DNA from: Piromyces finnis finn
Lineage: Eukaryota > Fungi > Neocallimastigomycota
DNA: 64,000 nt
NCBI GenBank assembly: GCA_002104945.1
Contig: MCFH01000022.1
Location: 124,001 to 188,000, forward strand
Direction of reading: 5' to 3'
The notes beneath the pieces are model-generated. The model did not search any database. It saw only the letters and a program-made list of their open reading frames with translations, and was not told where the DNA came from. Below are positions 8,487-54,192 of this stretch, piece after piece. Both the position numbers and the translations under genes were made by a program. Position 1 is the stretch's first letter; the number at the start of each line of letters is the position of its first letter.

Positions 8487-8488
8487 AA

Positions 8489-9648: not shown

Positions 9649-9652
9649 CAAA

Positions 9653-11073: not shown

Positions 11074-11080
11074 CAAATCA

Positions 11081-18150: not shown

Positions 18151-18165
18151 TTTTTTATTTATTTT

Positions 18166-18252
18166 AGAGTCATATGTAGGAAAGTTGTAATGTATTATTT
18201 TTGTATTATGAACTCTCTTAGACTCTCTTGAGAGTTCATTTCTTAGTTTTTT
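18166..18252 (-). promoter_or_regulatory. -1 ribosomal frameshift signal of B (A AAA AAC plus hairpin/pseudoknot)
   Basis: Heptamer directly before the gag stop, 6-nt spacer, perfect 10-bp stem, possible 6-bp second stem. Confidence 0.8.
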
Positions 18253-19151
18253 GAGTTCATCTTTTGAACTTTATTGACATAATTATTATTATTGTTTGAA
18301 TTTTGATAATGGGTTTTATTCTTATTGAATTTCCTATTGTTTCTCTTATTGTAATGTTGATTTTTATTATTATTATTATTGATATTTAATTTATTATTAG
18401 TAGCAAGAGAATTTTCAAAAATTATACACTTTGTAACCATTTCACTTAAAGTGTTAGGTAAAATATCAGCTTTCTTAATTTCATTCTTATATTTTGGATG
18501 TAAACCATTTAAAAATATTAGTGAAAGACTAATGTCATCTATCTCTAAACAACGACTTAAATCTCTAAATTTGTTAATATAATCGTTCACTTTTCCATAA
18601 GCTTGTCTTAATTCTATTAATTGAATCATGGCTAATTTGGTACTGGTAACATTTGAAAAAGCTTTGTTTAATTCACTTAATAGTTCGTTCATAGTCATAG
18701 GAGTAATACCATCTTTATATTTAATATGATACCAAGTTCTGGCAGAATCACGTAATCTAACAACAACAAAGTTAATTTTTACTTCTTCAGATAGTTGATT
18801 GTTAGGTGGAGTTTTAAAGGTAGCTTGGCAGAGTTCGCAGAATAACTCAGTCTGAGTAGTATCACCAGTAAAGAATCCTGGATCTGGTACTTGTTTGATA
18901 GGATAGGTTCTATTACGCATTATAACATCATGATCTTCATCATAATCAGTAGAAGATTCCTCGGTTTCAGTATAATTAGCACGACTCTTAAGTTCCTTTA
19001 ACATAGCATCCATACGTTCTAACAAGGAGGTGGTATTTTTATCCAATTGTTGAGTGATATACTTGTCTAATTCACCACAAAGATTTTTCTTAAATTCTTC
19101 TAAATCTTGAGGCTTTAGGAATTGTTGAACTGGTTTAGGTGTTGGTTGAGT

Positions 19152-19154
<3 letters not shown>
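18243..19154 (-). CDS. gag: Gag of element B (303 aa, no CCHC knuckle)
   Basis: Retrotransposon gag-like motifs RLRDSARTWY and FLNGLHPKYK; position between the PBS and pol. Confidence 0.9.
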
Positions 19155-19199
<45 letters not shown>

Positions 19200-19240
19200 A
19201 AATTAAGTTTTTTCCTAAGGTAGTTATGGTAAAAAACGCG

Positions 19241-19251
19241 GTAAAGATTAT
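19241..19251 (-). promoter_or_regulatory. Self-priming PBS of B (ATAATCTTTAC)
   Basis: Abuts the 5' LTR; exact complement at 19485-19495. Confidence 0.8.
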
Positions 19252-20285
19252 TGTAAAAGTTTTACTAAACTTATAATTTAATATTAAAATATTAAATTAA
19301 ATAAAAGGTTAAAAGATAACTAGGTTAGAAAAAAAAATGTTTTATTAAAATAATCTTAATTGATTTATAAATGAATAATTATATTATGTATTATAGTTAA
19401 AATAATTCCTTTTTATTTTATTTAAAGAATATATATAATAATAAGATTATTTAATAGTAATACTTATTAAGTATTAATAAGATAATAATCTTTACAAAGA
19501 TTTAATTCATAAAACTATTCTAAACTATTTATACTATTTGTAATTTTACATTCAATAATAAAATAACTTTTCAATACATGATTATATTCATAATATATTT
19601 TATAATACTTAAACTAAACTTAAGACTTATTCCTAATTATTAAAAAATAACTATTGTTTATAATATTCATAATATTAATTATTTCTTAATTATAATATAA
19701 TTCATTGAATATAATATTAATAATTATAATCCTCTAGTTCAAAGATTATAAATTATGTTGTTGAAATAATTATTATAAAATAAAGTTAATTAGTTCCGGA
19801 AAATAATTTTAATTTAATTAAACAATATTTTTTTATACTTTGAGTGAATGATTTATGTTTGATATATCAGGGGTGATCATTCTCTGAATAAACAATTAAT
19901 CATTGCTAACAAAATATCTTTAAATTGGAATATCTCGTGAACCAGCAGAGATATTGACCTGATTTTAAGATATGTTGTTTGTCTCGAGCGTGGCTTTCTA
20001 ACGAACGTAATTATAACCAAAACATTTTTATTCAAAAATCGTCATTCGTTGAGGAGATACGCGTGTTTTTTCTTATTCCATTTTAACGATAAGGGTTAAA
20101 GTTATTTATTATAAAAATTATTAAGGGTTAAGGTCATATTTTAACCTTTTCTAAATTTTTAAATATTTCTTAATAAAATTTTATAATTTATTTGAAAATA
20201 AAATATTTGTTGATTTTGAATTTTCATAAGTGATTTCACAATTCCAAGTGATCTTGAAATTGTAATTTCACTAGTATTCGTGACA
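19252..20285 (-). repeat. 5' LTR of B
   Basis: Near-identical to 12590-13623. Confidence 0.95.
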
Positions 20286-20351
20286 ATTATTCATAAAATA
20301 TTTAAAATATTATATTTTTCTATGCATCTTGTATCAATATTAACATATGAG

Positions 20352-20422
20352 GCGTTAATAGTATAGAGGTAGAATATTTGCCTTCCAAGCAAATGGCCCG
20401 GGTTCGATTCCCGGTTAACGCA
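20352..20422 (+). tRNA. tRNA-Gly(UCC)
   Basis: Cloverleaf: acceptor GCGTTAA/TTAACGC, anticodon arm TTTGC-CT-TCC-AA-GCAAA, T-loop TTCGATT. Confidence 0.95.
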
Positions 20423-20430: not shown

Positions 20431-20502
20431 GCCTGTTTGGCTTAGTGGTAGAGCGTCGCTCTTGTAAAGCGAAGGTCGGTGGTTCAATTCCGTCAATAGG
20501 CA
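20431..20502 (+). tRNA. tRNA-Thr(UGU)
   Basis: Cloverleaf: acceptor GCCTGTT/AATAGGC, anticodon arm TCGCT-CT-TGT-AA-AGCGA; TTTT at 20507-20510. Confidence 0.93.
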
Positions 20503-21127
20503 TTAATTTTAAAAAAACTTGTTAATTATTTTTTTGTACATTTTTTCTTAAATATAAATGAAATATAGTAATTTTGAAACTATTAATTGATTAAATATTA
20601 ATATAATAATATTTTGCCACTAGTTCGAATATGCACCCCTAGGTTTTGTGATATGTTAGGTTATATTGTTAAGATCGAGAATTCTAATTTATTATCATAA
20701 TAATGACACTAATCTTGCCTACCTGAGATGGACAAGTATACATGGTACATTTTAAATTAGAAGATTAATAATGTGTGTTGACATAAATAAACAAACCAAA
20801 AACGCAAGCAACATTCCTTTCTCGTAATAAATGGAACATTGCGGTGGTTAATATGCATGGTCTACAGGATCATATGTGACAAAATCATATAAATAAAGAA
20901 TATAGTACAATTATTAATTATGTAAATGTATTAAGGAGCGTTTAGGCTGAAATTTCAATATAACAGACCAGAAAGGTCATAACCATTTAGCAATAAGAAA
21001 CAGTAGACATTTTCCAATAGCCATTATTACGATTATTTTAATAAATAGGAGAAATGTATTTTGTGGTTAAAAAATAATAATATATTAATGATAGTTTACT
21101 TTATAAAATATTTTAAATTATAAAAGA

Positions 21128-21129
<2 letters not shown>

Positions 21130-21179
<50 letters not shown>

Positions 21180-21208
21180 TTTATTATTATTATTATTATT
21201 ATTATTAA

Positions 21209-21290
<82 letters not shown>

Positions 21291-21296
21291 TTTATT
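21130..21296. repeat. (ATT)n microsatellite with AATTTT interruptions
   Basis: Read directly from the sequence. Confidence 0.95.
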
Positions 21297-21660
21297 AATA
21301 TCAATATTATATTAAAAATAAAAATATAAATAAGAGGAATAAAGAGTAATTTTAAAAATTCTTTGTGTGATTTTTAATATTCATTTTATAGTAAATTTAA
21401 TATTTAAATAATTTGTAATTATCATCTATATGTAATAAAAAAAAATTAAATAAAATAATTCAATAAAAATTTTTAATAATTATTTCTTATTAAAATTTAA
21501 CAATATTACTTTATTATATAATTAATAGAATATATCCTAACTTTTAAACTTAATAACTTAAATCCAATTAAACTCTTAATAATTCACACATTTACTTAAT
21601 AAAATAAATTTATATATTTTATATTCATATTTTAATACTAAGTATAAAAATGTTAGTTAA

Positions 21661-21732
21661 TGGAGATATCGGGGATCGAACCCGAGGCTTCTTGCATGCA
21701 AAGCAAGCACTCTACCACTGAGTTATATCCCC
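21661..21732 (-). tRNA. tRNA-Ala(UGC)
   Basis: GGGGATATAACTCAGTGGTAGAG...TT-TGC-AT...GGTTCGATCCCCGATATCTCCA; T5 run about 10 nt downstream. Confidence 0.95.
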
Positions 21733-21747
21733 AGCTTATAATATTTT

Positions 21748-22311
21748 TGATACGTGATAAAATTATATAGTTAAAAATATTAAATTTATATAGTTATTTT
21801 TAAGGGTTAGCAATTATTTAAGAAAAATAATAATTTAATCTATTATTGAATAACCAATAAAATATTATAAAAATTTTATATAAAAATAACAAAAATTCAC
21901 TTTTATTAAGAAAAGAGAGTTCTTTGATAAATATAATTAATTATTGAGAATTTTTATATCTGTTTTAACTAAAAATATTTTTTATATTAAATATATAAAT
22001 GTACTTAAAATTATTTTTATTAATAAAATAAAAGAGAAAGTTACAAATAAGATTTTTTTTATGTTTAATCCTTTTTTTTTCTTATATTCAAATACTTTGT
22101 GTATAAATTGTTAAAAATAATAAAAGTAAAAGCAAAATAATTAATAACACTAAAAAATAATTATTAGTTATAATATAAATAAATATACAAATAATCATTT
22201 TTTTTTTTATTCTTTTATTAGAATATATTATTTTGTATAAATCCCTTTTGTTCGACTCCTGGAAATAAAATAAATAATTAAATTTATGGTATTATTAAAT
22301 AATACGTACCA
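21748..22311 (+). repeat. 5' LTR of C
   Basis: TGATAC...GTACCA. Confidence 0.95.
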
Positions 22312-22319
22312 TAAATTTT

Positions 22320-22337
22320 TGGTGGAGAATCCGGGCG
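22320..22337 (+). promoter_or_regulatory. Primer binding site TGGTGGAGAATCCGGGCG (tRNA-Ala-like 3' end)
   Basis: TGG start 8 nt after the LTR; its complement reads as T-stem, acceptor stem and ACCA; identical copy at 57339. Confidence 0.85.
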
Positions 22338-22472
22338 AGCAAAACAAAATAATATGAAAAACAATAAAAGATAATAATAATATTTAGAAGAACTTATATA
22401 TATATATATATATAAAAAAAAAAAAAAAAAAAGGAAATATAAATATATAAATAATAAATAAATAAAAAAAAA

Positions 22473-23723
22473 ATGATGGATGCATCAAAATTACAAAGGG
22501 CTATCCCACAGTTAAATGAATATGGAAAGGATGTGGATAGTTGGATGGAAGAATTTTCTCGGATAATGGAAATCTATGACATAACTGAGCCTAGAAGAAT
22601 TTTTATATGGGCTAAGGAGGCTGTTGACTGTGATATTAAAGAAGTATTAAATTCTTTAGTAAAAAGGAGAAACGACGAAATGCATTACCCAAAATTCAAA
22701 GAAATCCAAGTAGCCATAGAAGAGTACTTAGAGATAACTCCTAATGAAAAATGTTCTAACCTAAAACTTCTGAAAATTAGGGATAATGAAACAATAAAAA
22801 ATTTCAACTATAGATATTTAAAATTATACCATCATTTAGATCATGATTATATGAGGTTGATATCTGTAGAAGATTATTTAAATGCTATTAAAACGAGAGT
22901 ATATCCACACTCTCAGGTTATTATTTCAGAATGTGAAACATTAACAGAAGCTTTTAAAGTGGCTGAAAGAGCTGAAAAGGCCGAGAAGAAAACAATGAAT
23001 AATAGTTATATTAACACTAATAATAATGCTAATACTGCTAACATAAACATGTTAACCCAAAACTATGGATATTCCTCTCTTTTGAATCATCCAATATATA
23101 GTACCCTTACTAATCATAGCTACCCAGATGATTATCCTAATATGAATTATGGAAGAAATTATAAGAATATGGATATGTACGATCAACCTAGAAATTTTTA
23201 CAATAATCATAATAATTATAATAATCACTTAGGGTATAGTAATTACAACACTTATGAAAATAGTCCTAACCTCAATAATAGTGGCAATCCTAGAAACAAT
23301 AATCGATTCGGAAATATTAACAAAATAGGATATATTAAAAACGCTAATAATTTTAATCAAACCAAATTTAGTAATTTTCGCAATTTCAATAATAATAACT
23401 CTAATAATGGAAATATTGAATTTAATAAAGATGAAAATGGAAATATTAATGCAGATAACCACCAAGGATATAATAATAATATTAATTATAATAGAAATAA
23501 TACTATTAGTGGAGGGTATAATTCTAACCCTGGCTTACAAAACAATACTTATGGTAATAAGCTTAGGGCCATTCAGTGCTATAGATGTAAACAGCATGGT
23601 CACAAAGCCAGTGTCTGTCCATATTCTATGGAACAGATTAGGATGTTTCAAAACGGTACTAATAATAAAGAAGTAAATAATAAAGATGGAATTAACAATG
23701 TTAAGCATTTAAACTCCAATTAG
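22473..23723 (+). CDS. gag: Gag of element C (416 aa, Asn-rich)
   Basis: Zinc knuckle CYRCKQHGHKASVC; position after the PBS. Confidence 0.92.
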   Translation: MMDASKLQRAIPQLNEYGKDVDSWMEEFSRIMEIYDITEPRRIFIWAKEAVDCDIKEVLNSLVKRRNDEMHYPKFKEIQVAIEEYLEITPNEKCSNLKLLKIRDNETIKNFNYRYLKLYHHLDHDYMRLISVEDYLNAIKTRVYPHSQVIISECETLTEAFKVAERAEKAEKKTMNNSYINTNNNANTANINMLTQNYGYSSLLNHPIYSTLTNHSYPDDYPNMNYGRNYKNMDMYDQPRNFYNNHNNYNNHLGYSNYNTYENSPNLNNSGNPRNNNRFGNINKIGYIKNANNFNQTKFSNFRNFNNNNSNNGNIEFNKDENGNINADNHQGYNNNINYNRNNTISGGYNSNPGLQNNTYGNKLRAIQCYRCKQHGHKASVCPYSMEQIRMFQNGTNNKEVNNKDGINNVKHLNSN

Positions 23724-23740
23724 GGAGAAGGATAACTCCC
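23708..23740 (+). promoter_or_regulatory. -1 frameshift signal of C (T TTA AAC plus GGGAG/CTCCC hairpin)
   Basis: Heptamer in the gag frame; the -1 frame is open from 23708 into pol. Confidence 0.75.
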
Positions 23741-23992
23741 AATAATCAAACCGTCATTAATGGAAAATATAATGAAAATAAAGATAATAAAAATATAAAT
23801 TTATTCAATTATTCAAATAATAAAAATCCACTTTATAATAATGATAATATACAGTATTCTAATAATCAATATGAAAATAATACTAATTATGCTCAAAAAG
23901 AGATTAATTTAAATAATAAGAATACTACTTCTTACGGAACTAGTTTTAATTATTCCAACAATGAAAAATATAAAGCTGAAAATAATAATGGG

Positions 23993-26900
23993 ATGAATAC
24001 TGATTATTCTATGAATGTATCAAACCAGAATGGAATTAGTGATATGTACCCTGAAATTGTTGCTGTTGCTACTAGAAAGAATAAGAATAATGATAAGAAA
24101 ACATTTACCCCATATAAAGTACCACCGGGTAAATTAAAAGATAATCCTGTACCAATATCTACCGCGGCAATGAATCACAATAAAACTGATATAAATGATG
24201 ACGACGAAGTAGTCCCACTTACAAGCGAGATAGATATGGAGATGAATGAACCAGTAAATATTAATAACCCTAAAGTAAATAATACTGATAATCATGAAGA
24301 TCAACTTAATAATGAAAAGGATAAGAGCAGTAGTGATGAGCAAGGTGAACCAACAAAGAAAAATAATCCTACTGTCAAATCAGGAAAAAGAATACATGCT
24401 GATAAAATTAGTGAAAATAACTCTAACTATATTGATGATGAAATTGGAAATAAATTGAGGAAAGATATTATTACAACATTTGATAATAGTTATAAAACAA
24501 AACCAACCAATCCTAAGAGGAAAAATTCCTATAATGACACTACTGATGATGACGCTCAATCTGATAAGAAAAGGAAAACAGAAAAATTGCAGTTTCTTGA
24601 TTTGTCATTTATTAATCAACCTAATATAACAAATGCAAAGAAGAAAAATAAGTTAGATAGAATAAACGAACTTTCAAATCTAGTTAGTGAAATTAATGAA
24701 GATAATAATAAAGCAGATGAATCATTGACTAAAAATGAAAAGCATATTAAAATACTTGAAAAGTTGGAAAACATGTACATTGAAGATCTGATTCGGGATA
24801 TTGTATCAACGGAAGTCAAAACTAAGTTAGTAAATTTGCTAGACTGGTTCCCTAAATTTAGAAGTGAATTTATAAAATCTTTAAAGTTAACTTCATTTAA
24901 AAACCCAGCATTAAATGTTATGTCACTTTTTAGTAGAAATAAAATTATTAAAGTACCTGGTGAAGTTGAAAATAATAATGCTGAAATTTTCTTGGATACC
25001 TGCTCTAGTGTTAATTTAATTACTAAATCAGCATTAAAGAAATTTCAAATCAACAAACCTTGTATTGGTACAATTACTGAAACTTTTCTACAAGCCTTCT
25101 CTAATAATAATTCAAATTCTAGTATTTATGAATTAAGTATAAAAATCGGTGATCTTACCTTTTCTGAATATTTTAGACTAGTAGACAAAGATGACATTTT
25201 TGATATACTAATTGGGGTTGATTCTTTAAAAAGAAATCGATTTGTTATTAACTTAGTGGATGATACTTTATATTTTATGGATTTAAGTAATAATCCAATT
25301 AAACTTACCAATTTGTGCTACGATATTAATATATACAATAATGGAAATGACAATAATCAAACTGAAGTTAATGATGATAAAGAACAGAATAATACTGATA
25401 ATGTTAAGCACACTAATTTTGATGATTATTACCTTTCAACTTATGGGATATTACCAGCATTAATTACAGTCACTAGTGAATCAACTACTAATAATCAAGG
25501 TTTAGATATAAAATTGAATAATTTAGAAATTAAAAGAAACATAATAAATAATATTATTACTGTATTACCTTTGGATATTCAAAACAAGATGAAGGATGTC
25601 TTTAACAACTTTATGGAGGTAATAGCCATTAAAACAGATGATTTAGGTAAGACTAAATTACTTCCTCATCATATTGACTTGCTACCAAATACTAAACCGA
25701 TTAAACAGAGAGCCTATAGATTACCGAAAGTTAAAGCTGATGCTCTAAAGGTAGAACTTACTAAGCTCATAGAGAATGGTCTTATTGAACCATCCCATTC
25801 ACCTTGGTCTTCACCTGTAGTTTTGGTTCCGAAAAAGAATAACCAAGTAAGAATGTGTGTAGATTACCGAATGTTGAATAATTTTACAATTAAAGACTCC
25901 TATGCTCTCCCCCTTATAGACGACATTCTGTATTATGTAGGTAATAATGCCGCAGTTTTAAGTACTATTGATTTGTTCTCAGGATACCATCAGATTCCAA
26001 TGCATCCTGATGATAAAGATAAAACTTGTTTTACCACTATTTTTAGTAATTATAATTTTGTTGTTATGCCCTTCGGTTTGTGTAATGCACCTGCGACTTT
26101 CCAAAGGGAAATGAACAGAATATTTTTTGATTTAATTGGAAAGTCTGTGTTCGTTTATATTGATGATTTAGTTATTTTTTCTAATTCTCTAGAACAACAT
26201 GTCACTGACTTAGCTTCTGTATTTCAAATTTTAAAAGATAATGGTTTGAAAATAAATATTGATAAATGTAATTTCTTTAAGCAAGAAGTTGAATTATTAG
26301 GTCATCTACTTTCTGTTGATGGTTTAAAACCTTTGGACTCGAAAATAAATGTTATATTAAATTGGATTCCACCTAAAAACATTAAACAACTTCGTTCCTT
26401 TTTAGGTGCAGTTGGGTATTACCGTAAGTTTATTTCTAACTTTGCACAAGTAGCTCAACCACTATACGAGCTCACTAAAAAAGGTATTCCTTACGAATGG
26501 TCCGATTCTTGTTCTAATTCTTTTGAAAATTTAAAATTAAAGTTAGCTTCGGCTCCAATTCTTTCTCCGCCTGATTTTAGCAAACCCTTTATTATAAGAA
26601 CGGATGCTTCTAGAAGTGGTATCGGTGGTGTTTTAATACAATTGGACAAAGATAAATTTGAGAAACCATTATACTACCAGAGTCGTACCCTATCTGATAC
26701 TGAAAGACATTATAGTATTACTGAACTTGAGGGAACTGCCGCCTATTATTGTGTTATGAAATTTAAATCATTTATTACAGGTAATAATTTTGATACTTTA
26801 TTAATTACAGATCACAAACCTTTAGTCAGCATTTTCAAAAATAAGGAACCAACAACAAGCCGCCACATAAAATGGATTACTGAATTTAGTGCATTAAGGG

Positions 26901-28414
26901 TGATTGTTCAATTTGAGGAGGGGAAGAAGAATGTTTTAGCAGACGCTTTATCTAGAATGGAGAGTTCTCAAACCCCTGTAATTATTAATAATGATGAAAA
27001 AAAAAATAGTAAAATTAATATTTCTGAATTTAATAATGCTAATGATTATTCTAATGAAGTTGGAAATAAAAATAAAATAGTTACTACAAAAAGTAAAATA
27101 AAAAAGAAAGTTAGATTTGATGACGATATTATAAATGTTAGTAAAAATGTTGATATTAGTAAAGAAATAGCAAACGTGATAGTTGAAAATAAAGACGTAA
27201 ATGGAGATATTCGTGTAGGTGATAGTAATGAACAAAGAGTAATGTTAAATAATTTTTTCAATGACTTTATAAAAAAAAGAATTATTTTAATTGATGGAAT
27301 AGAATATTATAAACATGGAGATAATTTTAGGAAAATAATTACTGATAATAATGAGAAAATCCGATTAATAGCTCAAGCTCATGCAATAGGACATGAAGGT
27401 ATTTATAAAACATATCATAGGTTATGTAGAGATTATTATTGGAAAGGAATGTCTAAAGATATAAAATTATTCATCAAAGGTTGCCATAAATGTCAAACAT
27501 GTAAAGTGCAACCATTAAATAAATATCCTGAAAATATTGCTACTCCACCAGAACTTCCTTTTACTCGTGTTAGTTTGGACTTAATAGGACCTTTAAATAC
27601 CACTAAAAGAGGCTCAAGGTATATTATTGCTTTAGTGGACTATATGACTAAATGGGTAGAGGCTTCCCCATTAATAAAAACTGAATCTGAAGATGTGATA
27701 AGATTTTTAACGGAAGTGTTTTGTAGGCATGGTATTCCAGAAGTCTTGGTTACAGATAATGGACCACAATTTAGTTCAGATAGAACTAAAGCATTCCTAG
27801 ATCTTAATGATGTGTTTGTACAATATATTACAACTTACCATCCTGCTTCAAATGGACAAATTGAAAACAGAAATAAAGAAATTTCAAAATATTTAAGAGT
27901 GTTAGGAAAAAATAATGAAGAATGGGACGATATATTACCTAGCGCTTTATGGGCACTTCGAACTGCTAAAAATGAAGTAACAAAATTTAGTAGTTTTGAA
28001 TTATTATATGGTCGCAGAGATATGCAACCATTTGAATTATCAATAAATTTAGATAAAAAAGGACCTGAAGAAACAGATGATGAATACTACCTTAGAAAAT
28101 TTATTACTCACCATAACTGGATTCAGGAAGCAATAAACAATATTGAGACTGCAAATGAGGTTTGGAGGGATAGAAGAAAACAAATAAGGAGATTAAGAAG
28201 TGAATTTAAACCCGGAGACCTTGTTTTGATAAAACACTTCAATCGTCGAAAATTGGACCCGTACTTTATTGGACCTTTAAAAATTATTAAACGACAATTC
28301 AACACTGTGACGGTATGTGACCCACAGACAGGGGAAATAGCCGAACGCAATATTCACCTTAAAAATATAATTCCGTATTATACCTCTTATGTAGGATATG
28401 TAAATGAAGAATGA
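23993..28414 (+). CDS. pol: Pol of element C (N-terminal extension, protease, RT, RNase H, integrase; no chromodomain)
   Basis: FLDTCS, YIDD, HxxxHxG...CxxC zinc finger, DDE core, GPY/F-like YFIGPL; the protein ends shortly after this motif. Confidence 0.96.
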   Translation: MNTDYSMNVSNQNGISDMYPEIVAVATRKNKNNDKKTFTPYKVPPGKLKDNPVPISTAAMNHNKTDINDDDEVVPLTSEIDMEMNEPVNINNPKVNNTDNHEDQLNNEKDKSSSDEQGEPTKKNNPTVKSGKRIHADKISENNSNYIDDEIGNKLRKDIITTFDNSYKTKPTNPKRKNSYNDTTDDDAQSDKKRKTEKLQFLDLSFINQPNITNAKKKNKLDRINELSNLVSEINEDNNKADESLTKNEKHIKILEKLENMYIEDLIRDIVSTEVKTKLVNLLDWFPKFRSEFIKSLKLTSFKNPALNVMSLFSRNKIIKVPGEVENNNAEIFLDTCSSVNLITKSALKKFQINKPCIGTITETFLQAFSNNNSNSSIYELSIKIGDLTFSEYFRLVDKDDIFDILIGVDSLKRNRFVINLVDDTLYFMDLSNNPIKLTNLCYDINIYNNGNDNNQTEVNDDKEQNNTDNVKHTNFDDYYLSTYGILPALITVTSESTTNNQGLDIKLNNLEIKRNIINNIITVLPLDIQNKMKDVFNNFMEVIAIKTDDLGKTKLLPHHIDLLPNTKPIKQRAYRLPKVKADALKVELTKLIENGLIEPSHSPWSSPVVLVPKKNNQVRMCVDYRMLNNFTIKDSYALPLIDDILYYVGNNAAVLSTIDLFSGYHQIPMHPDDKDKTCFTTIFSNYNFVVMPFGLCNAPATFQREMNRIFFDLIGKSVFVYIDDLVIFSNSLEQHVTDLASVFQILKDNGLKINIDKCNFFKQEVELLGHLLSVDGLKPLDSKINVILNWIPPKNIKQLRSFLGAVGYYRKFISNFAQVAQPLYELTKKGIPYEWSDSCSNSFENLKLKLASAPILSPPDFSKPFIIRTDASRSGIGGVLIQLDKDKFEKPLYYQSRTLSDTERHYSITELEGTAAYYCVMKFKSFITGNNFDTLLITDHKPLVSIFKNKEPTTSRHIKWITEFSALRVIVQFEEGKKNVLADALSRMESSQTPVIINNDEKKNSKINISEFNNANDYSNEVGNKNKIVTTKSKIKKKVRFDDDIINVSKNVDISKEIANVIVENKDVNGDIRVGDSNEQRVMLNNFFNDFIKKRIILIDGIEYYKHGDNFRKIITDNNEKIRLIAQAHAIGHEGIYKTYHRLCRDYYWKGMSKDIKLFIKGCHKCQTCKVQPLNKYPENIATPPELPFTRVSLDLIGPLNTTKRGSRYIIALVDYMTKWVEASPLIKTESEDVIRFLTEVFCRHGIPEVLVTDNGPQFSSDRTKAFLDLNDVFVQYITTYHPASNGQIENRNKEISKYLRVLGKNNEEWDDILPSALWALRTAKNEVTKFSSFELLYGRRDMQPFELSINLDKKGPEETDDEYYLRKFITHHNWIQEAINNIETANEVWRDRRKQIRRLRSEFKPGDLVLIKHFNRRKLDPYFIGPLKIIKRQFNTVTVCDPQTGEIAERNIHLKNIIPYYTSYVGYVNEE

Positions 28415-28433
28415 AAAGTGAAATTTTAAGGAA

Positions 28434-28476
<43 letters not shown>

Positions 28477-28532
28477 AAATTTCAAAATCTAAATTTCAAA
28501 AAAAAAAAAAAAAATAAAATAAAATAAAATAA

Positions 28533-28568
<36 letters not shown>

Positions 28569-29018
28569 AATAAATAAATAAATAATAAATGATAATAAAT
28601 AATACTAATAAATGATAGTAGTAATCATAATAAATAAACAATATTACAAATATATATAAAAATTTAATACTTACAAAAATAATTTAAAAGAATTTCAGTT
28701 GATGGAAAAATACATTTCAATTAATAGTAATTGTGAAATTTCAAAATTTCAAAATTTCAAAATTCAAATTGTAAATTTGATCAAATAATAATTAATAATT
28801 TTAATATAATAATTATAAATAATAATTATAATAATAATTTTTATTTAGTATATATATATAAAAAAAAAAAAAAAAAAATTTAAATTTCGAAATCTAAATT
28901 TTAAAAAAAAAAAAATTTTAATAATAATGATAATACTAAAATTTTCCTTTGTTTTATCGTATATCAATGCTTGCCATAAGACTTCAGGAGACGAAGTTTA
29001 ATTTCGGCGGAGGCATCT

Positions 29019-29583
29019 TGATACGTGATAAAATTATATAGTTAAAAATATTAAATTTATATAGTTATTTTTAAGGGTTAGCAATTATTTAAGAAAAATA
29101 ATAATTTAATCTATTATTGAATAACCAATAAAATATTATAAAAATTTTATATAAAAATAACAAAAATTCACTTTTATTAAGAAAAGAGAGTTCTTTGATA
29201 AATATAATTAATTATTGAGAATTTTTATATCTGTTTTAACTAAAAATATTTTTTATATTAAATATATAAATGTACTTAAAATTATTTTTATTAATAAAAT
29301 AAAAGAGAAAGTTACAAATAAGATTTTTTTTATGTTTAATCCTTTTTTTTTCTTATATTCAAATACTTTGTGTATAAATTGTTAAAAATAATAAAAGTAA
29401 AAGCAAAATAATTAATAACACTAAAAAATAATTATTAGTTATAATATAAATAAATATACAAATAATCATTTTTTTTTTTTATTCTTTTATTAGAATATAT
29501 TATTTTGTATAAATCCCTTTTGTTCGACTCCTGGAAATAAAATAAATAATTAAATTTATGGTATTATTAAATAATACGTACCA
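29019..29583 (+). repeat. 3' LTR of C
   Basis: Matches 21748-22311 apart from T-run length. Confidence 0.95.
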
Positions 29584-29587
29584 TTTT

Positions 29588-30267
29588 TGTGTAATAATTA
29601 TATTATATTTATTATATAATAATAATTATTAGCTTTAAATTAATAATATAAACTATTATTAAAATGTGAAAATAAAGGTAAAATTAGAAACTTAACTTAA
29701 TGAGTTTATTATAAGAAATTATAATATACAAAACCAAATGTATCAGAATTATTTTGTGTATTTAATAGTTTTTTTAATATTTATTTTATTACTTATTATT
29801 TTGTATAAAGTTATTTATTATAATTAATCTTATAATAATAACTCTTGATTTCTCAAATCGAACTCAAGAGTACTATTTATATGTTTTATTCTATTAAATT
29901 AAAATTTCTAAGAACATTCTAATCTTAACAAGAATCTTTTTAGGAAAAGACTAGAAGAAAAACCTAAAAAGTTATTTGATTGATATTCTAATCATACCAA
30001 TCATCGTAATATTAAGTAAAACCGTTGATAACGGGTAAAACCTTAATATCCGATTTCCTATTACATACTAATATATAGTTGTATAATATTATTAATGTAA
30101 TTAGTATGTGTTTTATCTTTTATAATACAAGTATATATATAAATGAATGTATAAATACATAATTAAATAAATTAATTAATCTAATATAGCGAATGAATAA
30201 TTATTAACTAAATAAATTATTTGTAATGTTTAATACTAAGAATAAATAATAAGTATTTATTTTTACA
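29588..30267 (-). repeat. Solo LTR, family J (copy J1)
   Basis: TGTGTAAT...TTTACA; shares a structured module with four other copies; strand inferred from G-U pairing. Confidence 0.75.
29917..30054 (-). other. Structured RNA module in J1 (ENE-like loop, hairpin, U-rich pseudoknot)
   Basis: Stems covary across the five J copies. Confidence 0.7.
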
Positions 30268-30271
30268 ATTT

Positions 30272-31894
30272 TGATAAATAATAATTATAAATATATTATA
30301 AATTTGATATTAGTAGAAAATTTGTGAAGATATTAACTGGATTTAAAACAAATTCAGATAATAACTATAATTAATTAAACATAATAATTAGAATTAAATA
30401 ATCCCAATAATTATTTTAAAACACCTTTAAAAGTCACCTTTTAAATTCTGATTCAGTGAAAGGGTTATGATTTCAAAAAATTTAATATCAATACACTATA
30501 ACCCTTAACCAAAAATAAACAAACACGAAACAAGGTGTAACTCGCCAAAAACGATCGCTACGGCTGTAAGTGATACGGCTATGAAACCAGGTTTATTAGA
30601 AAGCTTAAGGAAAAAGCTACATTTTGGTACAATCGCGGTCCTTCTAACTGGTCATTTAAGGAAGATATGATCATTTGAAGATTTTAATAAGTAAATTAAA
30701 ATTAATATGATATCAAGTATGGATCATAGACATTTCTTATGACTTGACGAAAATTAAAAAGATATCAATAGAAATTCTAATTATATTAATTTAATTAATG
30801 ATAGTGACTGTTACTAAAAATAGAACTAAACCATTTAGGTGTAACAGTTAACATTTATAAATTAAATAATTTTAATTATTATAAAATAGGTTAATGGATC
30901 AAGTGTTTAAATGATTAATCATATGTTTATTTTATTTTATGTCATGACAAAACAAACAAACAAGCAAACAAACAATCTTATTATATTATTAACATATTAC
31001 ATGTAATACTTTATTTTTATCAATTTAATAATCTGAACAAAGAATATAAAATAGAATGAATTGAATTTGATTTTAATTCTTTGTAAAGATTATAGTTATA
31101 ATCTTAATTATATAGTTATTAAATATATTATCATTTATATTATTATTAATAAATAAATAAAATTTTATAAAAAAAGTTATTCTAAAGAATAAATATTAAT
31201 TTTTCATTTGGAAGTTTAAAGGGTTATTTTATATTTAAATTTAATTTCTTAAAAACATATTTACTATATAATTGATAACATTCTGACCTGGCCGCATAAC
31301 CAAATCCAAAAACTTAACAAAATTTTATTATAAAATAATTATTAAATAATTTTATATAGTTTATTATAAAAATATAATTTACATAAAATCAAATATTTTA
31401 TAAATTTATATATTTGATTGGGTTAAATTATAAAAATAATTTTTAATATAAAGAATAATAATATTTTTTAGTAGAAAATGAGAAGACTTAGATTACTAAT
31501 AATAAGTTAAATTTTAATAATAGTTAATATAATTAATTAGTGAATACATAATAATATTTAAAAGACAAAAATAAGTTTTTATATAATAAAAATTATTGTT
31601 AAAAAGAGCGTAAGAACAATAAATAAAAGAAAATATAAAAACGAAATTAAACTTGTCTAATTTGTAATTATTGTGTTAATAATAAATAATATTTTATAGA
31701 ATAAATCTGGTGTTATTATTCTATATAAATATTATTAAAATAATAAAACTATTAAAATTATAAAATAACTTAAAATAAATTAATAAAACTAGTAGATATT
31801 GTTAAAGCTCGTACAATAGCTGTCGAGATAAAACAATATAAGATAACAGAAGAAGTAGTTAAAAAGTTGTAATATAATTACCAATCCGTTATCA
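30272..31894. repeat. Solo LTR, family F, interrupted by E
   Basis: 4-bp TSD ATTT. Confidence 0.85.
30323..31319. repeat. Solo LTR, family E (997 bp)
   Basis: TG...CA; 5-bp TSD AAATT; reverse copy at 61691-62822. Confidence 0.85.
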
Positions 31895-31897
31895 ATT

Positions 31898-33002
31898 TGA
31901 TACGCTACTCACATAAAAACATGATAAAAACTAGCTGAATAAACACGACTTAACCCATAGTAACTTATAATAAAAAATAAACAATAATAACCCTTAAAGA
32001 TGAATGAATAATAATTTTATGAAAATATAACCCTTTCTTTAAATAAATAATATTATCTTTATTATATAATAAATTCTGAGTAAAAACGACCTAATAGTGA
32101 TAATAATAAAATAAATTATTAAATAAAATAAATTATTAAATAAAATAAAACGACTTAATCCAATAATGTACTAAAATAATAAAATAATAATAAATAAATA
32201 AAAATGAATAAATAAACTAAAAATAAAATGATATACATCAAATTATTAATTCTAGTGTTTATCCAAGTGTTCTTTAGAAATTCTCTTAAACTTATAAATT
32301 AAAAAAATAACTAATTGAGTAATTATTACTAAAATGATAAACTTAAAACCTGGAAATAGAACAATAATAACAATTCCAAAGATAAAATACAGAACTCTTT
32401 TATGTTTCTGTATAAAATGAGTGTTTATAATAATTGATACTTTTAATATTTTAATTTCATTTTAATTTTATTTTAATATTATTTTAATTTTAAATTTTAA
32501 TTATTTTATTCAAGGTATTATACATTTAATGATAGTCAATGATAATTTATAATAATTTTTCTAAATTTAAACATTTTGAAGTAATAAGAAAATCAAATAA
32601 GTAATATTCTATAATATTTTATAATACTAAGACATAATTTTAATTTATTCTTTTAATTTTAATAAATAATAACAATAGTAATAATAGCATTTAATAGTTA
32701 AAAATAATAATACATGTAATAAATGAAAATGTATAAAAGGAAGATAAAATTCTTCTTTATAAAGGGCGGACAATAAATAGAGAATAAAAAGACCATAAAC
32801 AGATAATAAATAAATTATAAAATATAATAAAGATTTAATTTAAAACATAATAAGAGTTTATTTTCGAGTTTTGAGTGATTTATTTGTTAATTATAAAACA
32901 TATTTTATTTTATTTTAAATTTATTGTTTCATCATTATAATATAGAATTTATTATTTATTAAAAACATTATATTATTCACAAATATATCGGTCAACGCAT
33001 CA
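31898..33002 (+). repeat. Solo LTR, family L
   Basis: Reverse complement of 8489-9648; followed by TATT. Confidence 0.85.
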
Positions 33003-33006
33003 TATT

Positions 33007-33790
33007 TGATACAAGATGCATAGAAAAATATAATATTTTAAATATTTTATGAATAATATCTAATCCTTTTATAAATTGTATATCAATTACTAGTATTAAT
33101 AATAATTAAACTATATTAGTATAAATTATTATGACGCAAATGTTACACATATATTAGAATAATTAATTACACAAGAAATGAAAAGATATAAAAATAGTGA
33201 AAAAGAACCAGATATAAAGAAAAAAGAGAAAAAGGGAGAAAAACTTTTCATATATAAATAATACTTGATATTTTAGTTTTAAGTATAAGTTCTATTTTAT
33301 TTTATTTTAGTTACAGTTTATTTTAGTTTAGTTTTAGGTCACTAATTACGTATTTAGTATTTACTATATTTAATTCAGTTTAAAATATTAATTATAAAAG
33401 AAAAGAATAATTATTGTTTATTTTTATTATTTCAAAAAGTTATATTTTATTATTAATAAGAATTTTATCAACATATTTTTATATTTACATTTTATATTTA
33501 AGTATTTATATTTATTAAATCATAACTTTCGATTCTACTAGTATTGAATGTTATTAATCTTATAGTCATAATAATAATAATAATTAAATAAAGAAACTCT
33601 AAACCAAAATCTATTTAATTATATTATTATAAAATTTATTATTTTTATTATTTGTTTTTATTATTTATTTTTATTATTATAAAATAGAAATAAATACAAT
33701 ATTATCTAATATATTATTCAACTCTCATTCCCTATTGCTAACGTTCACAATTATATTTTATTTATGGTGTTTTTGAAATATATTGCATCA
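33007..33790. repeat. Solo LTR, family M
   Basis: TGATAC...GCATCA; 4-bp TSD TATT. Confidence 0.85.
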
Positions 33791-33794
33791 TATT

Positions 33795-34627
33795 TGTGTA
33801 ATAATTATTATATATTTAATAATAATTATTATCTACAATATAATAATACAAATCGTAATATGTATTATTAAATTGAGAAGTTTCTTAATAGTAAATAAAA
33901 ATGAATAATTATCTTAAAGAGTTTATTATAAGTGAATTATAATAACAAACACAAAATATTAAGACTATCTTTAATGTAAATATTTTTTATGAATATAGTT
34001 TTTGAAAGGGTTATTTATTATAATTGTCTTAAAATAATAACTCTGGATTCTTTAGTGGAATTCCAGAGTTCTTATATTTATAATTTTTTGATAATTTAAA
34101 GTTTAATATAGAATTTCTAATCTTAACAAATAATCTTTTTAGGAAAAGACTAGAAGAAAAACCTAAAAAGATATTCGATTGATAACTAATATATCAATCA
34201 TCGTAATATTAAGTAAAACCGATTAAAATTCGGAAAAACCTTAATATCCGATTGTCCTAATATGTATTTATATTTTCTAATTGTTTCTATAAGTTATTTC
34301 AAAATACGATACATAAATATAAAATACAAACGTAAAATAAAATATATAATGTTTCTTATAAAATGTAATACAAAAATTATTAATTAAAAAATAAATGAAT
34401 GTTTACTATTATTTTAAATATATTACTAAATTAAATAAATAAATAATTAATATAGTAATTAAATAAATTTTAAATTAAGTAAATGAATAACTAATATCAA
34501 TATAGATAAATGTTTATAGTAATTTAAATGAATGTATGCTAATAGTTTAAATAAATAATTAATTTAATAATTAAAAAATAATTAAATAAGAATTAATTTA
34601 TACAAAAAATAATTATTAATTCTTACA
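33795..34627 (-). repeat. Solo LTR, family J (J2); structured module at 34115-34252
   Basis: TGTGTAAT...CTTACA; conserved module. Confidence 0.75.
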
Positions 34628-34682
34628 TTGTAAGAAATATTTGTGGCCATAAGTTTGCCCACAAATATTTCAATTGAAACCA

Positions 34683-35481
34683 TGTCACGAATACTAGTGG
34701 AATCTGCAATTTCAAGATCACTTGAAATTGTGAAATTACTTATAAAATTTCAAAATCAATAATATTTTATTTTCAAATAAATTATAAAATTATATATTAA
34801 GAAATATTTAAAAAATTTATAAAAGGTTAAGATATGAACTTAACCCTTAATATTTTTATAACAAATAACTTTAACCCTTATCATCAAAATTAAATAAGGG
34901 AAAACACTCGTATCTCCTTAACGAATGACGATTTTTGAATAATGGTTGGGAGATTGTGGGTTCGTTAGAAAGCCACGCTTGAGATAAACAACATATCTTA
35001 AAATCAGGTCGATATCTCTGCTGGTTCACGAGATATTCCAATTTAATTTAAAGATATTTTGTTAGTAATGATTAATTGTTTATTCAGAGAATGATCACCC
35101 CTGATGTATTGAACATAAATCATTCACCCAGAAGGATATAAATTATTGTTTTAATTAAATTAAAATTATTTTCCGGAATTAATTAACTTTATTTTATAAT
35201 AATTATTTCAATAACATAACTTATAATTTTTGAATTAAAAGATAATAATTACTAATATTATATTCAATGAATTATATTATAATTAAGAAATAATTAATAT
35301 TATGAATATATAAACAATAGTTATTTTTAATAATTAGTAATAAGTCTTAAGTTTAACCTTAATATTATAAAAAATAATCATGTATTAAAAAGTTATTTTA
35401 TTATTAAATGTAAAATTACAAATAGTATAAATAGTCTAGAATAGTCTTATGAATTAAATCTTTGTAAAGATTATTACCTTA
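34683..35481 (+). repeat. B-family solo LTR, U3-side part (remainder at 44226-44454 in the opposite orientation)
   Basis: Starts TGTCACGAATACTAG; flank AACCA matches TGGTT at 44221-44225. Confidence 0.85.
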
Positions 35482-36002
35482 TGATATGAAATATTATATA
35501 AAACTCTAATTATTAATAAAATTATTTTATTAATAATTACATAAAATAAATTAAAATAGTCATGTAACAACGTGACTAAAAGCAATTGAGGCGTAAATAA
35601 ACTCACAAGATAAAATAAATTTAAGTGATAACATAAATTTATTTTATTAATTTAAGTAATATAAACATAAAATTATAACATAATTTTATGTTATGTAAAT
35701 AATTTCTTTTATTTATTATTTTATTTATAATATTTTACATTTTATATTTATATTTTATTGTATTTTTATTATACTTTAATAAATATTTTTATACTTTTTA
35801 TACTAGTTATTATATATTTATTAATTAAACAAACAAAACATAGTTTATAATTATTAAAAGATATATAAATGTATTATTATTTCTTATAATTAATTCTTTG
35901 CTTCTTGTATTTTTCTAGCCAAATTTATATTCAATAAAATTAATTTGAAATAATATTACATAAAGTTTCCCCCTAAAAAGGAAATAGAACCGAGTTATAT
36001 CA
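35482..36002. repeat. Solo LTR-like element T nested in the B-family LTR
   Basis: TGATA...TATCA; 4-bp TSD TAAG (CTTA at 35478-35481, TAAG at 44451-44454). Confidence 0.65.
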
Positions 36003-37154: not shown

Positions 37155-38071
37155 TGTGTAGTAATTTTATTATAATATTTATATTAAATAGTATAATATA
37201 ATTACTTGTCGATAACTCAATATTAAAATTTAATATTAAATTATATGTATATGGAAAGAAATAATAAAAAATTAAATATGAAATTAAAAAACTAGAACTT
37301 AACGAGTTTATTATAAGGATTTATAATAAACAACAAAAAACACAAATGGGAAGAGGGATGAGAATAAAATGTATAATATAAGAATTATGTTTTATTAATA
37401 ATGATTTTTTATTAATTAATTTTTATTAAATAAAATTATTTGTTATTTATTATAATTAATTTTTCTTATAATAATAACTCTTGAATTCTAAAGAATTTCA
37501 AGAGTGTTTATTTATATTTTTATTAAAAAATAAGGTTAAATAAATGAGTTCTAATCTTAACAAATAAAATGTTTAGGAAAAGACTAGAAGAAAAACCTAA
37601 ACAAGTTTTCAACCAATATTCTAATCATATTGGTCATCGTGTAAATTTTAAGTAAAACCAATTATTTGTAATAATAATCGGAAAAACCTTAAAATACCGA
37701 TTTCCTAAAGTAAATCCGTGTTTAGATATAACAGGTAAATTAATTAGTAATATATAATTAAAGGGTAAAATTACGGATTCTTGTATATAAATATTATTTA
37801 AAAATCAAATGAACAAATTATTATTTAATTAAATAAATTAAATAAATTATATAAATATATGAAATATATTTAACTAAATAAATTAAATAAAGTATCTGAA
37901 TGTATACATTATATTTAACTAAATAAATTAAATAAATAATTTAAGTGTATAAAATATTATTAACTAAATAAATTAAATAAATAATTTAAGTGTATAAAAT
38001 ATTATTAACTAAATTATTAAACTAATAAGAAATATTAATTATTTAGATTGAAATAATTATTATTTCTTACA
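37155..38071 (-). repeat. Solo LTR, family J (J3); module at 37549-37701
   Basis: TGTGTAGT...CTTACA; conserved module. Confidence 0.7.
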
Positions 38072-39293
38072 TATTGATACGCTACTCATATAAAAACATA
38101 ATAAAAACTAGCTGAATAAACACGATGTCAAGAGTTAGAGTGGATTTAGAACTATAATTAAGTCTACTAGGTTAGGATAGGCTTAATTATATAGTAAATA
38201 ATAAATTTTTATAAATAAAAGAGTAATAAATATAGTTTTTTAAGAAATATTTTATTTGATTTTTATAATATAAATAAATGATAATTATTAATTTTAAATA
38301 TTGAATTTACTATATAAAAATGAGTATAATAATCTCACAAAGAACTTCTTAAAGTTGTTCTTTATTCAACTTATTTATACTTTCATTTTTAATATAATGT
38401 TGATATTAATAAAGTATAATAATAATATAATTTAAGTTATACATGAATAATAATATAAATATAAATATAAATATTAATAAAATATAATAATAATATAATA
38501 TAATTTTCTTTAGATATCGATATTAATAAGTTGTTAAAAATAATATTAATAATTATTTAAATGAATCATATTTTACTAATTGGTTTGTTTAATATTAATT
38601 AATTGTTACACTATTTATCTCCGGATAATAAATAGCTTTCCAATTAATATTTATATTAAATAAACTATTATTAGTAAAATATTATTAAATTAATATTTTA
38701 ATTAATTTAACTAATAATTCAAAATTATGAAATTTCATGAAATGTCAAATTTCATGAATTGTGATTTTGACAGTGATAATATCTGTATCTAAAATTTTAT
38801 AAATAAAAATAAAGAAAATAAATATAAATGATTTTTATACTTGTTCATTTTCAAGTATTAGTTAGTTTTATAAAATAAGTTTATTTAATTATAAATTTTG
38901 ATATTTAATAACTCTCGTATTATTAAATATATATATATATATTTTATTATTAATACATCTCGTATGTATATGAACATAATTATAAATATTATTTTAATAA
39001 ATTTAATATTATTATCTAATTTTAACGGATTATTAGGAACAATTTTAAAATGAACAATTTCTATCACTATTTATATAAAATTATTATTTTAAAGTATAAT
39101 TATAAACAAATAAAGACTGTTTAATTTAAAAAGAATTAAACAATTAAATAAACAAAAAGTTTACATTTATAATTTTTAATTTAATAATTTTATACATGTT
39201 AAATCTTTTAATTTTTTCTGTATTTTAATTATTGTTATTATTATTACTATTATTATTAATTTATAATTTATAAATTTAATTATTTATTAATTA

Positions 39294-40605: not shown

Positions 40606-41086
40606 TGTAAAGATATCAAACGCCTCAGCTTGATATCTTTAATGTAACTTAAGCCACAAGTATTATTGTTTAAGTTACACAAATTATTCAGAAAAAGAAA
40701 ATGAGACATAATTTATTTATTAATAATTAAAGTTTAAAACAAAATAAATTATTAATTTATTTTTAATATTTAACAAGTAAATTAAAATTCGCAATTTAAA
40801 TCCCTAGTTTTAGTATTGTTTTTTTCATAGAAATAGATAAATAATATATAAATAATAAATGATTAATATATCAATAATACATGGGCACATATTCAAATTG
40901 AATAGTACTTAATTTGAATTGCCAATTGTATTTTACTAAAAATAGTTATAGTTTAAATATTTATTAATAGTTAAGATTTTAGTGTAGATTTTAAATAATA
41001 TATATGAAATAAATAGTTATAATATAATATAAATGTATTTAGGAAAAATATAAATAGAAGATATTTTTCATTATTTTATCGATGTA
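40606..41086 (+). repeat. Truncated A-family LTR
   Basis: Reverse complement of part of 5620-6201. Confidence 0.85.
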
Positions 41087-46811: not shown

Positions 46812-46822
46812 ATAAAAACACT
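46812..46822 (+). promoter_or_regulatory. Self-priming PBS of D (ATAAAAACACT)
   Basis: Abuts the 5' LTR; exact complement AGTGTTTTTAT at 46627-46637. Confidence 0.8.
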
Positions 46823-46883
46823 CTAAGAAAAAGATCGCTACCTCAGTGCCTCGTTTATTTGCTTACTTCTAATTTTTTTTTTT

Positions 46884-53043: not shown

Positions 53044-53047
53044 CAAT

Positions 53048-53951: not shown

Positions 53952-54192
53952 TTAAAGTTATTATGAATATTTAAAATATTTGAAATATTTAAATTTAATT
54001 AGGATTCTTTTGTTCCTTAAATTTAAATATTTATCTTTATTTAATTTTGACGGAATTATTATAAAATAATTTATTATTAAATTATTCCATTGAATATTAA
54101 AAACTTCATAGTTAATTTTAATAAATATTAATTTATTATTTAATAATTAATAGTTAATTATTAAATAATCTAAAGATATATTATATCTTTAC

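Follow-up and report, generated by a model that had tools for sequence, protein, structure and literature searches.

How retroelements of several families come to lie end to end on the upstream side of a transfer RNA (tRNA) gene is the question raised by a stretch of 64,000 nucleotides (nt) from the gut fungus Piromyces finnis (Neocallimastigomycota; GenBank assembly GCA_002104945.1, contig MCFH01000022.1, positions 124,001 to 188,000 of the forward strand), which is referred to here as the window. A first account of this DNA, made from its letters (the sequence-only reading), had proposed that six retroelements, named from the inside outwards C, J1, F, L, M and J2, were inserted one after the other 13-15 base pairs (bp) upstream of a tRNA-Ala gene, in positions 21733-34627 of the window. 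From the analysis described here, it is concluded that, in all likelihood, the stacks are anchored by tRNA genes and two lineages of Ty3/gypsy elements, i.e., class I and class II, integrate at fixed distances upstream of these genes.

DNA of long terminal repeat (LTR) retroelements makes up almost all of the 64 kilobases (kb) of the window, which is 79% A+T, with a G+C content of 13-41% across 2-kb bins. No host protein gene was found in it, and Rfam and ARAGORN detected no RNA genes in the window other than tRNA-Gly, tRNA-Thr and tRNA-Ala. The tRNA-Gly(TCC) gene (20352-20422) and the tRNA-Thr(TGT) gene (20431-20502), both recognized by Rfam and ARAGORN, are on the plus strand, and tRNA-Ala(TGC) (21661-21732; Rfam score of 69.9 bits, the ARAGORN call being one base longer at each end) is on the minus strand; the Gly-Thr unit and tRNA-Ala are therefore convergent. 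Chains of LTRs abut the upstream sides of both units, the left-hand stack with tRNA-Gly and the right-hand stack with tRNA-Ala as presumed anchors, in contrast to the 1158 bp that separate the 3' ends of tRNA-Thr and tRNA-Ala (20503-21660), where no intra-window repeats were detected.

The innermost and, from its position, youngest layer of the right-hand stack is element C, a full-length Ty3/gypsy element of class I (21748-29583, plus strand). As the sequence-only reading had stated, the distance from its LTR to the mature end of tRNA-Ala is exactly 15 nt: the native upstream flank of the tRNA gene, AGCTTATAATATTTT, occupies positions 21733-21747, its last 4-5 nt being the source of the duplications described below, and the TG that opens the LTR is found at 21748. 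The LTRs of C (565 nt; 21748-22311 and 29019-29583) show a single indel between them, and the element is bordered by a TTTT duplication (21744-47 and 29584-87). It carries gag (22473-23723, 416 amino acids) and pol (23993-28414, 1473 amino acids), as well as a primer-binding-like sequence of the TGG type, TGGTGGAGAATCCGGGCG, at 22320, 8 nt past the 5' LTR. Outwards from C follow solo LTRs on the plus strand: J1 (29588-30267; TGTGTAAT...TTTTTACA), which is 73.7% identical to J2 and has its termini in common with a third copy, J3; F (30272-31894), which is interrupted after its first 51 nt; L (31898-33002; TGATACGC...ACGCATCA), with a copy on the minus strand (8489-9648) that is 87.7% identical; M (33007-33790; TGATACAAGATG...TTGCATCA); and J2 (33795-34627), the outermost layer described earlier. 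The six layers were recovered when the boundaries were mapped again, with spacers of 3-4 nt that read TTTT, ATTT, ATT, TATT and TATT from C through J2. The termini of these layers recur in copies of the same families that have other neighbours (J at 37155-38071; F at 9653 and 51835; L at 8489-9648 and 38075; M at 20336 and 11876), so that the boundaries were not fitted to the hypothesis.

Two parts of the earlier description had to be modified. The five LTR families, said to be unalignable, are different but not wholly unrelated: C, L and M have terminal motifs in common and some similarity in the unique 5' (U5) region, and the primer-binding sequence of C is also found after an L-like LTR end at 57330, from which the orientation of L was read. 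In the class I elements of known orientation, i.e., C, L and M, the 5' end points toward the tRNA gene. The outer part of the stack is also more complex than had been described, given that F carries a nested solo LTR, named N, and that the stack extends past 34627. Just outside J2 lies a piece of 54 nt (34629-34682), of which the first 11 nt match an inverted J-type terminus; from this weak match, limited to 11 nt, the piece is probably a remnant of an older inverted class I LTR that was cut by the solo LTR of the K family that follows. Farther out, and on the plus strand, are J3 (37155-38071), the spacer TAT, the first 51 nt of an L LTR (38075-38125) and a class II LTR named P (38126-38772).

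Removing the layers one by one, beginning with the innermost, reproduced for C, J1, F, L and M the series of duplications that had been read as copies of the tRNA flank. Element C leaves TTTT at 15 nt from the tRNA gene, a duplication of 4 nt; J1 leaves ATTTT at 15 nt, a duplication of 5 nt that borrows the first T of F; F leaves ATTT at 14 nt (4 nt, borrowing the first T of L), and L and M each leave TATT at 13 nt (4 nt). Such T-rich matches were not equally frequent at shuffled junctions: in the window, a random CA is followed by such a match with a probability of 0.02-0.034, and none of 200,000 random trials reached five matches out of six. We infer the order of insertion from geometry only; in the record that the sequence-only reading had called datable, an absolute date is possible only for C, both of its LTRs having been kept. 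The identity of each layer to its nearest paralog was considered as a clock and discarded, since the values (about 74% for J1, 98.8% for F, 87.7% for L and 86% for M) are not monotonic with the distance from the tRNA gene.

The same short distance was observed at other tRNA genes. Upstream of tRNA-Gly, the first 51 nt of an M-family LTR (20286-20336, minus strand) show 100% identity to 33006-33057, where the M layer of the Ala stack begins; the 5' end of this LTR lies 15 nt from the tRNA gene, and the remainder of the LTR is found at 11876-12589. On a metagenome contig (L086), the 5' end of an M-like LTR is located 16 nt upstream of a tRNA-Ser gene, and positions 1-102 of M align with it end to end. 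In about 150 kb of contigs that contain close relatives of the C and K Pol proteins there are two tRNA genes only, each at one of the class distances, and no tRNA gene was found on 80 distant gypsy loci (approx. 0.5 Mb) that were used as a negative control; the relatives of C pol among the metagenome contigs of this control set are distant (26-43% identity). Most of the close-relative contigs (L081, L083-L085, L087, L088, L093, L096 and L097) end in or near the 5' LTR and carry no flank information, and on L091 the 5' LTR is truncated beside a chromovirus-like LTR end. The earlier proposal that insertion occurs repeatedly next to tRNA genes thus finds support in the tRNA-Gly and tRNA-Ser loci and in the repeat-free spacer downstream of the tRNA genes of the window.

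The site at 13-15 nt was the only one in the sequence-only reading, and it stands; what that picture lacked is a second class of insertions at about 65 nt. Its full-length representative is K (12590-20285, minus strand), with LTRs at 12590-13623 and 19252-20285, gag at 18243-19154 and pol at 14545-18150. The K LTRs (1034 nt) match at 1033 of 1034 positions, and the duplication ATTAT is present at 12585-89 and 20286-90. This element cuts the M LTR beside tRNA-Gly after 51 nt, M resuming at 12589, and the 5' end of K is thereby located 66 nt upstream of the tRNA gene. The solo LTR N (30323-31319, plus strand), with the duplication AAATT at 30318-22 and 31320-24, likewise lies 51 nt inside F; with F at 14 nt, N would have been 65 nt from tRNA-Ala, and uninterrupted copies of F at 9653 and 51835 represent the empty site. 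Both K and N thus have duplications of 5 bp. A second copy of N (N') is found 52 nt inside a different LTR, named Q, near 62.8 kb, for which an empty site exists at 45238. P adjoins the first 51 nt of its L copy, and its right flank is an inverted D LTR that resumes at position 48. The K-family solo LTR outside J2 (34683-35739, plus strand), which is 87-92% identical to other K LTRs, also has its 5' end toward the tRNA gene, from which it is separated by 65-68 nt once the class I layers are peeled off; no duplication was found at this LTR. In summary, the LTR pieces left on the tRNA side measure 51 nt (M cut by K), 51 (F cut by N), 51 (the L copy beside P), 52 (Q cut by N') and 54 (outside J2). 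The decisive case for the class II distance is found on another contig (L094), where the LTR of a K-like element (64% identity in Pol) starts 65 nt upstream of a tRNA-Val gene, in native flanking sequence with no resident LTR. The 5' terminal motif of N and P is also present in the LTR of a K-like element on contig L092. This contig contains a tRNA-like relic (371-446, minus strand), with a D-arm-like sequence, TAGCTGTTAGAGC, and a T-loop motif, GTTCGATTC, within a perfect hairpin. Between the putative 5' end of this relic and the start of the K-like LTR there are 65 nt, which represents a weak instance of the same distance.

Both C and K have TG...CA LTRs, a target duplication, gag and pol, and are therefore Ty3/gypsy elements (Metaviridae); the best match of both Pols among solved structures is Ty3. 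Their nearest named relatives are from Orpinomyces sp. (61-69% identity), and the nearest overall, with up to 86% identity, are in metagenome assemblies; the named relatives and the base composition agree with an anaerobic gut fungus as the probable source. According to Pfam, C pol has the order protease, reverse transcriptase, RNase H and integrase; its integrase has an SH3-like motif at the extreme C-terminus and nothing after it. K gag contains the Retrotrans_gag domain, and K pol shows reverse transcriptase, RNase H, integrase and SH3 domains. In the K integrase the SH3 domain is of the Tf2 type and is followed by 76 residues without a Pfam match, in which the Pfam Chromo domain was not detected even at an E-value of 10. 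This tail, nonetheless, aligns column for column with canonical chromovirus chromodomains. A structural model of the SH3 domain and the tail (predicted local distance difference test, pLDDT, of 83.6) has as its top match the Ty3 integrase in the TFIIIB-bound intasome (7q5b, E-value of 8e-5), and the modelled tail superposes on the chromodomains of MPP8, CDYL2 and HP1 with template modelling (TM) scores of about 0.8. From this alignment and this model, K is provisionally assigned to the chromovirus lineage, with an integrase predicted to end in a diverged chromodomain. Regarding the start of reverse transcription, the sequence beside the 5' LTR of K (19230-19251) shows no primer-binding site of the TGG type, unlike C, and K may be primed differently.

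The alternative to tRNA anchoring that survives best is that later elements home to the terminus of a resident LTR, e.g., by binding of the integrase to LTR-end sequences, in which case stacks would grow wherever an LTR is present and the tRNA gene would matter for the first layer at most. It accounts for the end-to-end LTR junctions, with spacers of 1-7 nt, that occur far from any tRNA gene (at 7900, 8486, 9648, 11073, 37150, 38071, 40108, 52456 and 53043), and whose spacers have no counterpart in the flanks of tRNA-Ala or tRNA-Gly. Nevertheless, we consider it unlikely for three reasons. The innermost LTR ends lie at 15, 15 and 16 nt from three unrelated tRNA genes (tRNA-Ala, tRNA-Gly and tRNA-Ser); the element on L094 lies 65 nt from its tRNA-Val gene with no LTR to home to; and the LTRs that class II elements cut differ in sequence and orientation and are cut at the same position of about 51 nt, which points to a ruler outside the LTR. 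It is even less probable, and indeed very doubtful, that the stacks were produced by rearrangement, i.e., segmental duplication, LTR recombination or misassembly of long reads, instead of serial insertion. A composite B-D block does appear twice (7082-8443 and 40108-38769, 91% identical), and LTR-LTR recombination clearly occurred, because P and the K solo LTR have mismatched flanks; the Ala stack, on the other hand, is formed by different families with clean TG...CA ends and matching duplications, there are empty sites for the nested elements, and the full-length elements have near-identical LTRs and intact duplications. Lastly, a chance pile-up in a repeat-saturated region, perhaps pericentromeric, in which tRNA proximity and T-rich duplications would be coincidental, is hardly credible: nearly the whole window is derived from retroelements, one of which (a chromovirus in the middle of an LTR) has no relation to a tRNA gene, and its base composition makes short T-rich matches cheap, yet random nesting would scatter insertions within LTRs of 600-1600 bp instead of setting six ends 3-4 nt apart, the duplication matches far exceed the shuffled controls, the same distances are found on two unrelated contigs, and the downstream spacer of the tRNA genes is empty.

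Several observations weigh against tRNA anchoring as the complete explanation. The left chain of abutting LTRs (7083-12589) is formed by B (7083-7900), D (7905-8486), L on the minus strand (8489-9648), a short F (9653-11073), B (11081-11872) and M on the minus strand (11876-12589), with spacers of 2-7 nt. The spacers of this chain and of the outer layers (ATC, CAAATCA, CAAA, CAAT and TCT) cannot be traced to the flanks of tRNA-Ala or tRNA-Gly; the layers bordered by them were either formed at another place or are not fully covered by the model. There are also several LTR stacks of the window that have no tRNA gene at their head, and a low-threshold Rfam scan of the window revealed no further or degenerate RNA polymerase III (Pol III) genes at the heads of these stacks. 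Two insertions fit neither class: the solo LTR E (10267-11060; TGTAAAAT...TTTTACA, CAATC duplication), nested 13 nt from the 3' end of the short F, and a K solo LTR (57619-58643, TCTAT duplication), located 15 nt inside the end of an E-like LTR, oriented opposite to the other K copies and an exception to the cut at 51 nt. The insertion of E may reflect a third register or a random event; a separate F-like fragment that had been considered at 10941-11074 is instead the 3' end of E followed by the last 13 nt of the short F. Concerning the duplications, no match was obtained for J2 on peeling, as the sequence-only reading itself had said, and none for the M LTR at tRNA-Gly; the lengths needed in the Ala stack are mixed (4, 5, 4, 4 and 4), and the 5-bp duplication of the Ty3 type is absent from C, L and M, which have 4 bp and where a 5-bp reading fails, J1 being read as 5 bp. 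No call was obtained for the relic on L092 with ARAGORN, run with tolerance for introns, or with Rfam at low threshold. No chromodomain is detectable in the C integrase; the ruler mechanism of Ty3 is for this reason not simply transferable to class I. Homing to LTR ends would equally hold the distance from the tRNA gene constant, and could explain the later layers equally well. Finally, the upstream regions of four tRNA genes in all were examined, which does not amount to a genome-wide distribution.

With these points considered, the following sequence of events is proposed for tRNA anchoring. Class I consists of C, of the families represented by the solo LTRs J, F, L and M, and probably also of B; its members integrate 13-16 nt from the mature 5' end of the tRNA, on the upstream side of the expected Pol III start and only a few bases from it, and produce duplications of 4-5 bp. 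Class II consists of K and the LTR families N and P, which integrate at 63-68 nt, about 50 nt farther out, with duplications of 5 bp and, where the orientation is known, with the 5' end toward the tRNA gene. Up to this point the account is based on observed geometry, duplications, domain content and independent loci; the order of events and the tethering are inferred. The anchor would be the tRNA gene itself and not the sequence upstream of it. It is established that TFIIIC and TFIIIB are positioned by the promoter inside the tRNA gene (PMC8632968, PMC5911963), and, by analogy, the target would be restored after each insertion because this promoter positions the Pol III factors whatever lies upstream. 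Each new class I element would then land between the tRNA gene and the previous element, which would be shifted outwards, and each class II element would interrupt the innermost LTR, leaving a piece of about 51 nt on the tRNA side; afterwards, the majority of the elements would be reduced to solo LTRs. That tethering by Pol III factors is the cause has, judged by analogy with other systems, an even chance or slightly better. With modest confidence, we also favour a broader view, in which two Ty3/gypsy lineages of anaerobic gut fungi each evolved a ruler-like integration, one inserting at about 15 nt and the other at about 65 nt, on the two edges of the footprint presumed for TFIIIB, and one of them re-using a diverged chromodomain; the tRNA genes would act as self-renewing landing pads that seed tens of kb, and the layers read outwards would give the relative order in which the families were active.

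Additional features of the window and of the related contigs were recorded. The tRNA-Gly and tRNA-Thr genes are on the same strand, 8 nt apart, and possibly form a single transcription unit; this proximity closes the upstream side of tRNA-Thr to insertion. A long (ATT)n microsatellite (21130-21290) is present within the repeat-free spacer between the tRNA 3' ends. The chromovirus mentioned above (46444-51512) is full-length, with a canonical Pfam Chromo domain, LTRs that are 99.5% identical and an ATTCT duplication; it is inserted in the middle of an inverted J-type LTR, has a G+C content of up to 41%, far above that of its surroundings, and shows no tRNA relation. In the region 53047-57156, two inverted B-family LTRs, each followed by the same leader of 92 nt, surround a degenerate C-like pol (open reading frames 54223-55356 and 55369-56331), an arrangement that looks like two convergent elements joined by recombination. 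At 5045-6201 there are two tandem repeats of about 580 bp that resemble A-family LTRs and are 90.7% identical, with an inverted third copy at 40606-41086. Among the other contigs, L094 carries at 6349-17539 two tandem K-like elements with a common middle LTR (LTR copies at 6348 and 12024), which could be a real tandem or an assembly loop. L086 contains an inverted repeat (5031-5764, 87% identical, centre at about 5397) in which the 3' ends of two M-like LTRs are opposed on either side of a palindrome (approx. 100 bp), which begins with a J-like terminus. In L082 (approx. 648-681) and L083 (approx. 109-140), the 3' end of a J-like LTR (…TTCTTACA) is found upstream of a C-like element, 4-25 nt from its 5' LTR; these junctions indicate that the stacking of J-type and C-type LTRs recurs in other genomes. 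Regarding the primer-binding sequence of C, its 18-mer gave chance matches in two GC-rich phage contigs among the viral contigs, which were discarded, and its 21-mer had no match in the genome contigs.

Targeting of tRNA genes is usually explained as a means for mobile elements to survive in compact, gene-dense genomes, with documented cases among ascomycete yeasts and dictyostelids (PMC5911963, PMC5006619). If the reading proposed here is true, it would represent an independent origin in an early-diverging fungus, and the repeat-rich locus would question the rationale based on compact genomes. K would be a second case, beside Ty3, of a chromodomain diverted from histone marks, and the layers would allow bursts of LTR families to be ordered with no need for a molecular clock. 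For integration assays, the locus provides elements of each class that are full-length and apparently intact, as well as a natural comparison of two distances at one tRNA gene; position-specific integrases could also be of interest as safe-site insertion tools for fungi that now have no genetic tools.

Position-specific integration upstream of tRNA genes has been described for Ty3, Ty3p, Tj1, Tyl3/Ylt1/Tyl6, Tca8, DGLT-A, TRE5 and NLTR-A/B, and the hosts are all ascomycete yeasts or dictyostelids (PMC5911963 Table 1; PMC5006619). In the full-text literature on tRNA-gene targeting, of which our coverage was incomplete, no description was found for Neocallimastigomycota or other early-diverging fungi, which is no more than an absence of evidence. 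Targeting of this kind is already known from Ty3, Tj1, DGLT-A and TRE5; what seems to be new is the lineage, the use of two distances and how deep the stack is.

Elements of the Ty3 type (Ty3 of Saccharomyces cerevisiae, Ty3p, Tj1 of S. japonicus, Tyl3/Ylt1/Tyl6 and Tca8/beta) insert upstream of the Pol III start and only a few bp away from it, approx. 11-20 nt from the mature tRNA (PMC5911963; PMC8632968), this start being expected about 10 nt upstream of the mature tRNA end (PMC5911963). Class I resembles them in being Ty3/gypsy and in its position near the Pol III start; it differs in its mostly 4-bp duplications, which are 5 bp in Ty3, in its host, and in that several LTR families share one site, with at least six layers. 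Where Ty3 inserts is determined by a tandem of the SH3 domain and a vestigial chromodomain, which is in contact with TBP and Brf1 (PMC8632968). The C integrase ends at its SH3-like motif and has no room for a chromodomain, therefore class I must use another contact; K has the putative tandem, and nevertheless inserts about 65 nt upstream instead of at the start site. The contact of class I could be of another kind, for example through RNase H, as in DGLT-A, whose RNase H contacts Tfc4 (PMC6101501). DGLT-A is also a Ty3/gypsy element and is found at a similar distance: its copies, often clustered, lie upstream of tRNA coding regions by about 15 bp (13-33 bp), and the genomes that harbour them are very rich in A+T (PMC5006619, PMC5911963); however, its host is an amoebozoan and it inserts in either orientation, whereas the oriented elements described here all point one way.

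The position of class II is roughly that of TRE5-A and NLTR-B, which insert approx. 40-64 bp upstream of tRNA genes and are oriented away from them, TRE5 by means of TFIIIB (PMC5911963). The likeness is limited to position (63-68 nt, 5' end toward the tRNA gene), given that TRE5-A and NLTR-B are non-LTR elements of the L1 clade that use target-primed reverse transcription, whereas K has LTRs and an integrase and not the endonuclease-reverse transcriptase ORF2 (open reading frame 2) of the TRE5/NLTR-B type. Skipper-2, a dictyostelid chromovirus with a diverged chromodomain, is associated with tRNA genes (PMC5006619), and in these features K appears to be comparable; Skipper-2 is nevertheless located downstream of tRNA genes, in contrast to the upstream position of K. 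As for Ty1-Ty4, the likeness is the use of tRNA genes as reusable landing pads that gather solo LTRs; Ty1 inserts over a wide range that follows the periodicity of nucleosomes and reaches up to about 1 kb (PMC5911963), whereas the layers described here are in register within 1-3 nt. What is new with respect to all these systems is an LTR element fixed at about 65 nt, of the chromovirus lineage and with a chromodomain that is predicted to be diverged, and the presence of two registers at one tRNA gene.

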